Source: Bugula neritina
Lineage: Eukaryota > Animalia > Bryozoa
NCBI GenBank assembly: GCA_964035545.1
Contig: OZ037770.1
Coordinates: 4,062,662-4,126,661, forward strand
Reading direction: 5' to 3'
Length of the DNA stretch: 64,000 nucleotides
A model generated the notes under the pieces. That model saw only the letters and a list, made by a program, of their open reading frames with translations, was not told where the DNA came from and ran no database searches. This document shows positions 24,301 to 36,300 of the stretch, piece after piece. Position numbers and translations under genes: made by a program. Position 1 is the first letter of the stretch, and every line of letters begins with the position of its first letter.

Positions 24301-27300
24301 CAATATTGAGGAGAAAGTCAGACTGAATGACTACATTATTAACATTAAAGGCAAGAAGAGAACATACCATGCCAACATGCCGAAGAAATATTTTGAGCGG
24401 AGGACGCCTACCGACCCTATGACTGTTGGAGCTGTGATGACTTTAGATGCTGCTGGTACTGGAATTATTGATCACGATAAGGAAAGAGAAGAATGCCAAG
24501 ATGATTTGTTGGACCTGTACAGTAAAAAACAGCAGAGTGATGAGATGGGCTATGTATTTACAGAACTTCAGAATCAAGGTGGAGTCAATCAAAGGAAAGG
24601 AGAATGTTAAAGCCGATTATCTAAGCAGAATTGACTCAGAATTTTAAGTAGTAAGGAGAAATTATCAAGATAATTTCTCTTAGAATGGGGGGTTGTCACA
24701 AATTCTGAGTGTACATATACCTATAGACTTACCGGGTTTTTCCTAATGATTATACAGGAACGTTCATAAGTGTTCTAGACTGATTAAAGAGATGGGTCAT
24801 TGTTCATTGTTGTTGTTTTCATTAGTCATGTTAACTACTGCCCAGCAATGTAAACAAGGTGTTGCGCAATAATTGCGAAATAACCATGGAACTTCCAATG
24901 TTTTGTTTTGTTTTGATTTTCTATCTTAATAATATTGGCATGTGGGGAATGTTTTCTACTAGAATTTTCTATACTGGAATGCTTGAGAATGTTCTAGAGT
25001 TTTTTTTGTTTACTATAGATACTGAGGCAGTTGTGCTTACAAATCAGTTCATTTTTATAAGTTCATCTGTGCATATCTTACTGGAGAAATAAAGTATACT
25101 TATATTCACAACTCTATTTACTCTCAACTGGATTAGCAGGTTGTATGCCAATTGTCTATACACTTCTGACTGCCAGACTTTTCGAACTTGTCACACTGCT
25201 ACCAACAGTTTTGTGACACTCAAAGACAAAAAGCAAAATAAGTGCAACTGAGATGAGAATGCTTTGACACATTTACAATATAGATTGGGACGAATATGTA
25301 ACAAATCATAGTATAAGGGAGGAAGCCAAAATAGAAGCCATCGTAATAGACATGAGGAGGAGACCTCTTCAGTGGTATGAAAATGTGTGCATAAGAGATA
25401 GGGAAGAAGATAATAAAATGGGGGCCTTTGATAAAGATACAGAAAAAGAGAAAAAGAGAGAAGCCAAAAAAAAAGTTAATGGATACAGTGAAGGATGACA
25501 TACTGAAATGTGGCCTCCCAGATAAAGATGTTGACCACAGAATCAGATGACACTCTCTGATAGCACTTGGTGCCCTGCAAAACCACCACCCATCTTGGAC
25601 CACGACGTACTAGTTGAGAAAGTCTGAGACAAAACTCTATAATAGACAATTTGCTGCTTTTCCAAGGCCTTTCAGGGTGTGATACAGTGGTGATAATGTA
25701 ACATGTTGGAAAGAGAGTCTTGGTCAAAAGAAGATGTGATTTCGTGACATTAGTGCTTCTTTTCAGGATGACTGTTCATACAAGCTATCAGGTTTATGCT
25801 ATGTTGCTACAATTATGCAAAGTGCTCATCTATGACATCTACAAGACTAAGGCTTGGGAAACCAAGGTCAGCAATGCTATTTGCGATGTGCCTTTAACTT
25901 ATGTACTTTGCCTCCTACAGATGAAGCTATTGGACAATGTCACCAGAGCACACCTCCAGGTAGCCATATGAAACTGCGGCATTAAACCCACTAGAACATT
26001 GGTAGGTGATAGGGAATCTAATAGAATCTCTTTTCCCAAAAGGAGTAGGAAATGATGTTGTCCTTACACCAGACAGCATTATGAAGTAGACCATGTTAGT
26101 TTATCTGGTGCACACTCGACGACTCTAGCTTTTGGCGATTTTTTACAATTTAGCTGCTACTGTATATAGATTTTTGCCTCAAACTATCAAAATTTTAACA
26201 AATAAAACTGAATAATTAAAGCTTTTCCAATTAAGCATGATTTTCTATGTCTATTCCTAATTTATTATTCCATTGAGATATTATATAGGCCGTGATGATT
26301 CACAAATGTTAAAGTTAAAATTGAACATATTATGTTCAATTTTAACTTTAGCTGAGCAATATGCTGCATCTGTATCTTTTTTTCACTTTCTATTTACTGG
26401 CAATAAGCAATGTTTCTCTTTATATATCTGTTCAGTGTCCAAACAATTATTCAAAAACCTTGTACCATTTCTCTGCACCATATCTGATGTTTTATTGAAG
26501 CAATTCCAATTTTTGAGCTGAGAAACATGTCTCTTGGCTCTTTACTTTGATTCCTTTTTACTGGCATGGCACAAATACATTCTAAAAATGCACATCTATT
26601 TTAATCATCAAAAAAATTTTGATTTTGCAACATAATATAGACTTTATGCCGACTAGATTACGATTTTTTCATAATTGGCGACCATCTTGGATTTCTCAAA
26701 ATGCTCAAGGGTGGCAGGTCCACACCCACCTGGAAACATTTACCTGGACCCTCAAGATAAATAATCAAAAGAGAAAAAAACTTTATCCGAGATTGCGAAC
26801 CTAACCCCCAGTTCTGCCAGACTATAATGGCATATAACTATAAAATTGTGTTATTCCCACATTATTATGAACCATTGCATATATATGTGTAAGTTCAAAA
26901 TATTGCATTTCATATTTTTCAATTATACAATGACACACCGTAATAACACTTGGTATAAGCATATAAAGGTGCCAGATATTGAATGTTTTAAACAACACAA
27001 GACCTGTGACAAACAAACCTCTCAGGTAGAGTAGATAATTCACAGCTCCTCATATTCAACTCTTTAAGTGATGTGAGTGATGACACAACTTCTGGTACTG
27101 TGTTGAGAGGATTCACTCCTATGTCTAGTTTCTCCAACTGAGTCAGCTGGCACAGACTATAATATAAAGTGTGTGACATATATGTGGTCTGCATTACTAT
27201 AATATTTTATACTTTATTCACATTTTCTTTTCAACCAGGTAAAACTATAGACAACTTAACTACCAAGAAACTTATTGTAGCATTGTACATGCAGAGCCTG

Positions 27301-33300: not shown

Positions 33301-36300
33301 ATATACAACTCAACTACCAAGCAACTTATTGTAGGATTGTACATGCAGAGCATGAGAAGTTAACAGTTTATTATAATAACATACAAGTATTCAATTATTA
33401 TATATACTCAGTGTGTGAATACTAATCAACTATACAACTGCTTACTATTATTTACAGTTTTATATCACAAGAATATATAATGACATACCTTAGAATTCAG
33501 TTATTTTCACAATATTACAGACATTATTTCATATAGAATTCAAAAACTTGCATTACACATATTTTTTAAATTGTATAACGACATGCCCTAATTATACTTG
33601 GTAAGAAATTATTTTATGATTTCAAGTGATAAATGTTTCAAACAATACAAAAACTGTGACACACAAACCTTTTAGGTAGAGTAGATAATTTACAGTTCCC
33701 CATATCCAACTCTTTAAGTGATGTGAGTGATGACACAACTTCTGGTACTGTGTTGAAAGGATTCATTTGTATGTCAAGTTTCTCTAACTGAGTCAGGTGA
33801 CACAGACTGTAATATAAAGTGTATGATATATATGTAGTCTGCATTACTATAATAATATTTTATATACTATATTGACATTTTGTTTTCAACCAGGTAAAAC
33901 TATATACAACTTAACTACCAAGCAACTTATTGTAGCATTGTACATGCAGAGCATGAGAAGTTAACAGTTTATTATAATAGCATACAAGTATTCAATTATT
34001 ATATATACTCAGTGTGTGAATACTAATCAACTATACAACTGCTTACTATTATTTACAGTTTTATATCACAAGAATATATAATGACATACCTTAGAATTCA
34101 GTTATTTTCACAATATTACAGACATTATTTCATATAGAATTCAAAAAATTGCATTACACATATTTTTTAAATTGTATAACGACATGCCCTAATTATACTT
34201 GGTAAGAAATTATTTTATGATTTCAAGTGATAAATGTTTCAAACAATACAGAAAATGTGACACACAAACCTCTCAGGTAGATTAGATAATTCACAGCCCA
34301 TGATATTCAACTCTTTAAGTGATGTGAGTGATGACACAACTTCTGGTACTGTGTTGAGAGAAGTACCTCCTATGTTTAGTTTCTCTAACTGAGTCAGGTG
34401 ACATAGACTGTAATATAAAGCATTTAGTATAAATGTAGTCTGCATTACTATAATATTTTATACTATATTCACATTTGGTTTTCAACCAGGTAAGACTATA
34501 GACAACTTAACTACCAAGCAACTTATTGTAGCATTGTACATGCAGAGCATGAGAAGTTAACAGTTTATTATAATAGCATACAAGTATTCAATTATTATAT
34601 ATACTCAGTGTGTGAATACTAATCAACTATACAACTGCTTACTATTATTTACATTTTATAGCACAAGAATATATTATAATGGCATACCTTAAATTATGTT
34701 ATTTTCACAATATTACAGACCATATTTCATATAGAAATAATAAATTGCATTTCACATATTTTTCAATCATATAATGACATAACCTAACAATACTTGGTAA
34801 GGAACTATTTTATGATTTCAAGTATTAAATGTTTCAAACAATACAAAAACCGTGACAAACAAACCTCTTAGGGAGAGTAGATAATTCACAGCTACTCATA
34901 TACAACTCTTTAAGTGATGTGAGTGATGACACAACCTTTGGTACTATCTTGAGAGGATTCCAGCTTATGTCTAGTTTCTCTAACTTAGTCAGCTTACATA
35001 AACTGTAATATAAAGTGTGTAATATATGCTTATATTACACACTTTATATTACAGTCTAGACTACATGTAGTCTCTTGTATCATATATTGACATATTCTGT
35101 ATTCAGCTATAATGTAAAATATGTAGCAAACAATTTTGTTGAGACAGGGTAAGCAGCAAAAAAATGCTATTATGCCATGTTATAGGTGTAATGGGTGCCC
35201 TGTCTATAATTGAGTGATTAGATGTATATGTATAAAGACATCCTGTTAGTTTAATGGATAAGCGTTACTCTACAATGTATTGCTAATATATAGCATGATT
35301 TATAATAATAAATGGTATAATTTGTTATAGCTAATCTGACACAAATTAGCATGTATTTAATACTCTGAAAATATTATATTTTCAAGTATATGGCTACATA
35401 TAATATGCTTATATATATTATGTATTGCAGATAAAAACCTTCTGCATAATCCTACATGTATACATGTACTGTAATAATATGTTGCTTCTATATTCAACTA
35501 CATATAACATGTTTTACTTTATGATAGCATGTGTAACACTACAGTTTCTCACTGTCTAGTTTCTACAACTCGTTCAGCTGGTAGAGATACAATGTTATAC
35601 ATATTACTATAGCTTTATATAGTGCATGATTACATCATGAGTAAGAATATACTTCAGCATTGACTCAGACACATCGTGGGTGATAATTACCACAACTAAA
35701 CTCATTTAACATTTACACAGCTATCATAATAGACACTCACTTGTCTAGACTTGCTCTGTCAGTCAGGTTAGAAACACATAGACACAGGGCTTTACCAGCA
35801 ACCTCTCCAATGTTGTTTGGAATTCTCCCTTCCAGTTTCAGATCTGTGATATAATAACTCCCAACTTCATGTTTCACCTCAGCAGTAGTATATGACTTGG
35901 TATTAGCATACTGTACATCTGACCAGTCTACAGGAGGCTGTCCAGAATGTCTGAACCAGATTTTCATCTTCTCTGTAACATCATACAGTGACAGTGTGAT
36001 TATTACACAGTGCTAGCAAGAAGTTTCTATCATGCTGAAACCTGTCACAATATCTATATATATATATATATATATATATATATATATATATATATATATA
36101 TATATATATATATATATATATATATATATATATATATATATATATATATATATATATATATATATATATATATATATATATCATTTGCTGTGTGTCAGAC
36201 ACCATAGCTATATATGGACATGTCCGACTACTTTAGGTTTATGAAAGTAAAATCTGCAAATTTAAAATGATCTCTAATTCCCTGAAAACAACTGCTTTGT

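Follow-up and report, generated by a model that had tools for sequence, protein, structure and literature searches.

The window analyzed here is a stretch of 64,000 nucleotides (nt) from the bryozoan Bugula neritina (assembly GCA_964035545.1, contig OZ037770.1). Its minus strand carries a gene predicted to encode a long series of leucine-rich repeats (LRRs), a Roc-COR GTPase module, and a caspase domain, and most of the LRRs come from an array of 14 short exons. We show that exons of this array have been duplicated in the germline and have recombined internally, and that the predicted binding face of the repeats is under diversifying selection. We put at roughly 60% the probability that the array serves as the sensor arm in an intracellular receptor of the sensor-switch-effector kind, diversified in the germline, that signals death or immunity against invaders. 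Selection on the concave face of LRR receptors is a familiar pattern; of more interest is an apparently undescribed bryozoan family of Roco-caspase proteins. Coordinates are window positions, with position 1 as the first letter.

Selection on the predicted concave face

Every array exon is 138 nt long, has AG..GT ends and phase 2/2, encodes two LRRs of 23 amino acids (aa), and recurs with a period of ~600 nt.

27019..35002, minus strand: array of 14 two-LRR exons, 138 nt each (Pfam LRR_4, 28 bits)
34865-35002, 34270-34407, 33669-33806, 33071-33208, 32485-32622, minus strand: array exons 1-5
31855-31992, 31254-31391, 30656-30793, 30062-30199, 29432-29569, minus strand: array exons 6-10
28834-28971, 28236-28373, 27619-27756, 27019-27156, minus strand: array exons 11-14

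The 14 copies comprise 11 distinct DNA sequences and nine distinct proteins, which we collapsed into about seven independent types. An initial annotation of this DNA had listed seven variants of the first LRR and seven of the second, all of which we found among the 14 exons, and had placed the variation at the predicted concave-face x positions of the LxxLxLxxN/C motif. The x positions of an LRR point to solvent on its concave side. Eight exposed x positions were set beforehand (exon codons 9, 11, 13, 14, 32, 34, 36, and 37), and their mean entropy over the seven types (1.59 bits) bears out the proposed concentration, both against any eight sites (p 5e-6) and against non-structural sites (p 1e-4). 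The hypervariable codons are 11, 13, and 14 in the first repeat and 34, 36, and 37 in the second, with codons 3 and 42 varying too. The first x of each strand (codons 9 and 32) is nearly constant, which confines the hot spot to the strand end and the loop that follows. We read the secondary structure from an AlphaFold model of a Watersipora homologue (P0043, at most 42% identical to the other rows; predicted local distance difference test score 81.6). In this model, x-L-x lies on a strand both at exon positions 9-11 and at the second-repeat equivalent, the helices fall in the conserved middle of the exon, and the fold has matches among LRR solenoids (SHOC2-like and Leptospira) and in the LRR of Chlorobium Roco. 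The variable sites are thereby predicted to cluster on one face, as the annotation had expected.

Pairwise nonsynonymous divergence (pN) was 0.36 at the eight x sites and 0.46 at the six most variable, compared with a synonymous divergence (pS) of 0.105 over the whole exon and a divergence of 0.064 between homologous introns. Codon models (two site classes, and M1a/M2a) were our own implementations, not those of PAML. With sites fixed in advance, the ratio of nonsynonymous to synonymous rates (dN/dS, or omega) was 5.0 on the concave face and 0.59 elsewhere (test against omega = 1, p 5e-7). With no prior classes, M2a was preferred over M1a (p 6e-6, omega 5.9), with posteriors of ~1.0 for codons 13, 14, and 36 and >0.9 for codons 37 and 42. 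The concave omega was 5.5 without the one chimeric exon described below and 6.3 on the seven collapsed types, and the two halves of the exon, each with its own tree, gave 3.9 (p 0.003) and 7.6 (p 1.5e-4). Diversifying selection on the predicted concave face, which the initial annotation had inferred and proposed to check by dN/dS and by intron divergence, is thus confirmed and holds under recombination controls.

The competing account does without selection for diversity and explains the variable exposed codons by a relaxation of constraint, by hot spots of mutation, or by gene conversion in patches. Recombination in the array is real and can inflate site tests, and exposed residues tolerate change; however, pN on the concave face is about six times the intron divergence, and the six hypervariable codons show no elevation of pS (0.12-0.16), which makes a mutation hot spot unlikely. 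Targeted hypermutation was rejected as well. We simulated 1,000 arrays in which the concave sites were neutral and gene-conversion tracts measured 30-1,000 nt; the observed excess of pN over pS (0.26) was reached in none of them, even though they diverged neutrally about twice as much as the real array. The likelihood-ratio test, run on 21 simulated arrays, gave a maximum statistic with omega >1 of 3.5, against an observed 25.3. Moreover, the same register varies elsewhere: six exons of four paralogous genes (L002, L007, L009, and L029) gave an omega of 5.9, two genes of a second bryozoan, Watersipora subatra (141-nt exons), gave 4.3 and 7.5, and 15 exons of 144 nt on contigs from the Joint Genome Institute (JGI) whose label is the mitogenome accession of Bugula neritina gave, when pooled, 2.0 (p 0.001). 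The account without selection is largely refuted, and we regard it as very unlikely.

The initial annotation had also described the middle of the exon as nearly invariant even at synonymous sites. Near-invariance stands in absolute terms (codons 18-33; pS 0.054, pN 0.031), but the synonymous constancy is not special, as the middle's pS is close to that of the introns and its two synonymous variants, against nine in the rest of the exon, are not significantly few (p 0.12). Since the synonymous rate of the middle is in line with the intron rate, no special explanation is needed; we reject a particular synonymous constraint and attribute the constancy to nothing more than duplication in the recent past and homogenisation. 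The cassette is young or homogenised throughout, and only the variable face stands out.

Duplication and recombination of the LRR exons

Along the array, the exon types run A B C C D (E/B) C C D E B C' F G. Two features of this order are detailed by alignment:

29482..34319, minus strand: four-exon block in two copies of ~2.42 kb each, 99.4% identical with their introns
31855..31992, minus strand: exon 6, a chimera of an exon-10-type 5' LRR and an exon-2/11-type 3' LRR

The junction of the chimera lies in the conserved middle, and that of the block duplication falls inside exon 6. A crossover in the middle gives new pairings of the variable patches. Site incompatibility was 0.29 between exon halves and 0.14 within them (p 2e-4); recombination within the array exons is real. 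Could the duplicated block be an assembly artefact or a merging of haplotypes? Exons 4, 7, and 8 are identical, as such an error would have it, yet the two copies differ at 14 aligned positions and by indels, and their junction makes a coherent chimeric exon. We consider an artefact highly improbable, and it would touch copy number only, because selection holds on the seven collapsed types.

The introns following LRR exons 5, 9, and 12 are of a second type, 31%-33% different from the other introns and 0%-9% among themselves, so that two intron lineages are interleaved in the array.

Comparison with other genes hints that LRR exons are also exchanged between paralogues, a suggestion drawn from few exons. 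Synonymous divergence between this gene and paralogue L029 is 0.51 in COR, 0.36 in Roc, and 0.19 in the LRR exon, and an exon upstream of another gene (72% identity in Roc-COR) is 95% identical to exon 14. Paralogue L002 differs from the large Roc-COR exon of this gene (19354-21359) by a pS of 0.02 in COR, 0.14 in Roc, and 0.30 in the LRR cap; judged from such divergences, the paralogues are mosaic along the large exon too.

These observations show that frame-neutral two-LRR exons duplicate and recombine in the germline through unequal crossovers, many of which fall in the conserved middle. Scaffold and introns are thereby kept ~6%-10% apart, and diversifying selection keeps the residues of the strand end and ascending loop ~36%-48% apart at nonsynonymous sites. 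The variable residues would form the predicted ligand-binding face.

Gene architecture, family, and proposed function

Joined together, 24 exons from 37140 to 15220 on the minus strand give an uninterrupted reading frame of 1,768 aa; one of their donors is GC. Pfam and homology searches were run exon by exon, and the joined model served as a frame check only. The predicted order of domains is an N-terminal cap, 28 exon-encoded LRRs, terminal LRRs, Roc, COR, an acidic linker, and the caspase; the Roc-COR and caspase end had escaped the initial annotation.

37110..37140, minus strand: predicted first coding exon, 10 codons (ATG, GT donor, phase fitting the next exon; inferred from sequence)
35741..35972, minus strand: N-terminal cap exon, 76 aa (AG..GT, phase 1/2, open)
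19354..21359, minus strand: large exon with terminal LRRs, Roc GTPase, and COR (Pfam and matches to Roco proteins)
19025-19111, 18681-18823, minus strand: two acidic linker exons (weak match to the Watersipora linker)
16897-17067, 16346-16568, 15929-16156, 15593-15696, 15220-15369, minus strand: caspase domain, five exons (Pfam and tblastn with a Watersipora homologue)

The cap exon had no Pfam match, and inspection of the N-terminal exons by eye revealed no obvious signal peptide; the protein is predicted to be cytosolic. Roc was recognized by Pfam (34.2 bits, cut-off 27), with P-loop and G3 motifs that are kept in 30 paralogues. It is followed in the expected order by COR-A (E 0.011) and COR-B (E 0.056), both below the Pfam cut-off; close homologues carry precomputed COR matches, and the large exon matches LRRK2 and the LRR-Roc of Chlorobium Roco. 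The caspase domain (Peptidase_C14, 32.8 bits, cut-off 21.4) keeps its catalytic His, and the catalytic Cys is replaced by Ser (EASSG), leaving the His-Cys dyad incomplete. The donor after the penultimate caspase exon (15592-15593) is GC and not GT, marking either a GC-AG intron or a lesion. An intron of 5.7 kb (21360-27018) separates the last LRR cassette from the Roc-COR exon; it holds retroelement remains (a weak Tf2 SH3 match, 24197-24607) and a 123-nt repeat in two inverted copies (21886-22008 and 26682-26804; 84%).

In the 216-Mb genome we found at least 68 Roc-COR exons (from 135 candidates), together with 780 candidate LRR exons and 135 matches to caspase exons. A caspase exon lies 1-16 kb downstream on the same strand for all 68 of the 68 scored Roc-COR exons, pairs being assigned by coordinates and by eye. 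The caspase motif pattern occurs at 40 sites in its Cys form and at six in its Ser form, all six on this contig; neither form fits many of the paralogues. Among named proteins, the nearest relatives come from Watersipora subatra (32%-35% identity) and are labelled MFHAS1-like by NCBI; at least eight of these relatives have LRRs and caspase in one annotated NCBI chain, mostly with QACSG. These relatives, the JGI label, and an identity of up to 92% point to a cheilostome bryozoan, probably Bugula neritina. Two Watersipora genes contain intact AG..GT 141-nt LRR exons (L041:6920 and L032:28356) that are absent from the NCBI models. Scanning metagenomes with the exon alignment yielded a single close relative, L033; the seven other LRR loci recovered were distant. 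We found no description of a bryozoan Roco expansion or of an animal LRR-Roc-COR-caspase protein in a literature search that covered few subscription journals.

Under the receptor interpretation, judging by the domain architecture and by published precedents (PMC3341825, PMC11378527, PMC8195603), ligand binding to the LRR arm may shift the nucleotide (GTP) and dimer state of Roc-COR, which could bring caspase domains together and signal death or an immune response against invaders. Without its catalytic Cys, this copy would act as a scaffold, partner, or regulator of catalytically intact paralogues. The putative ligand is preferably microbial, with conspecific or symbiont-derived ligands also possible. 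Several points weigh against this interpretation. Single Bugula-labelled JGI loci gave only marginal evidence of selection (p 0.009-0.056), omega outside the concave face is 0.6-1.0, which is high for a constrained scaffold, the COR scores fall under the cut-off, and the structure is that of a homologue, modelled and read as secondary structure only.

The same architecture and selection would also be expected if the ligand were conspecific non-self (in fusion and rejection, or the control of chimerism) or came from the animal's own symbionts. Bryozoans live in colonies, and their allo-incompatibility involves cell death (PMC8195603). Diversifying selection is also typical of allorecognition genes, although most of those known from invertebrates encode cell-surface proteins and have their allelic diversity at a few loci, whereas the diversity here lies among exons and at least 68 dispersed paralogues and the gene has no obvious signal peptide. 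We think this version unlikely. The same holds for a combinatorial receptor, in which cells would skip or mix exons by alternative splicing or somatic rearrangement. All array exons are frame-neutral, the Watersipora exons left out of the NCBI models give a hint in this direction, and Ectocarpus ROCOs are alternatively spliced (PMC11378527). However, those omissions may be annotation errors, 14 of the 14 array exons join into one open frame so that no choice of exon is forced, and germline duplication explains the observed variety. Doubtful to a slightly greater degree is a broader conjecture, in which bryozoans would have a large, self-contained class of animal immune receptors (LRR sensor, Roc-COR switch, and caspase effector, with active and pseudo-caspase partners). 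Splicing or somatic rearrangement would also mix the cassette exons inside one individual, so that recognition repertoires would differ between zooids or clonal lineages.

For the variable concave face, the initial annotation had drawn a parallel with lamprey variable lymphocyte receptors (VLRs) and plant NLRs. A selected LRR face is indeed common to them, but a closer precedent is the LRR-ROCO family of brown algae (Ectocarpus and Saccharina), in which each exon encodes a single LRR, exons are shuffled, and concave residues are under selection (PMC3341825, PMC11378527). Ectocarpus ROCOs share with the bryozoan gene an LRR-Roc-COR chain, repeated frame-neutral shuffled exons, positive selection on the concave face, and a large family. 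The array works like theirs; we do not file it as a member, as an exon there is 72 nt with one LRR and here 138-144 nt with two. The word caspase is absent from PMC11378527. Brown algae being stramenopiles and bryozoans animals, the likeness is probably convergent.

Bacterial LRR-AP-GTPase(Roc)-COR systems, in which caspase is one of at least 24 effector domains (PMC8195603), likewise combine fast-evolving N-terminal LRRs, Roc-COR, a C-terminal effector, and several paralogues per genome. They are intronless and vary their effector, unlike the scored bryozoan genes with their uniform caspase. Animal Roco proteins (MFHAS1/MASL1, LRRK1/2, and DAPK1) have the LRR-Roc-COR core in common with this gene, which differs in having no kinase, a caspase in the chain, and at least 68 paralogues with selected cassette-exon LRR arrays. 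Death or immune domains are fused to Roc-COR in invertebrates (PMC9334734); our atlas matches for Roc-COR-Death, -CARD, or -TIR in molluscs, sponges, and Aplysia all scored <0.9 and are leads only.

Lamprey and hagfish VLRs resemble the array in their variable concave-face residues and interchangeable LRR modules, and VLR structures match the exon profile. Their cassettes are copied somatically into an incomplete gene for an extracellular receptor, whereas here spliced exons form a complete gene for a predicted cytosolic protein. Given the complete 1,768-aa open frame in the assembly and its spliceable exons, VLR membership was rejected. Plant and animal NLRs share the sensor-switch-effector logic, a large clustered family, and a selected LRR face, but the bryozoan switch is a Roc GTPase and not a STAND ATPase, with the LRRs first and the effector last. 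Pfam found Roc and small-GTPase models only, with no NACHT or NB-ARC, and NLR (STAND) membership was rejected as well.

The family would place a large receptor repertoire, built on a Roc-COR switch fused to a caspase, in an animal phylum whose immunity is almost unstudied. We found the Roc-COR-caspase design described only for bacterial conflict systems and exon-cassette diversification only for brown algae, so the family, if our interpretation is true, would represent a further independent origin of NLR-like logic. It offers testable candidates for telling friend from invader in a colonial, symbiont-bearing animal, and a natural setting in which to ask if dimerisation of Roco proteins is controlled by ligand binding to the LRRs, a question relevant to LRRK2 biology.

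Other features of the window

Several of the remaining features are, or probably are, derived from mobile elements. A Ty3/gypsy-like long terminal repeat (LTR) retrotransposon at 49985-54484 has an open gag-pol frame of 1,316 aa (reverse transcriptase, RNase H, and integrase) and 232-nt LTRs (49985-50216 and 54253-54484) that are 100% identical, pointing to a very recent insertion. At 9961-14144, direct repeats of 307 nt (95%) surround a GC-rich 4 kb with short open reading frames (ORFs), one of which has a weak C2H2 finger; this is probably a non-autonomous or degraded LTR element. The region upstream of the gene (38000-47000) is GC-rich (44%-52%) with many ORFs of 100-155 aa and is probably derived from mobile elements; the three ORFs tested had no Pfam match. 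A 388-nt inverted repeat (91%) at 2706-3091 and 5356-5740 is tied to long TA and TG microsatellites, and a 38-nt minisatellite (16.7 copies, 96% matches) occupies 62331-62975.

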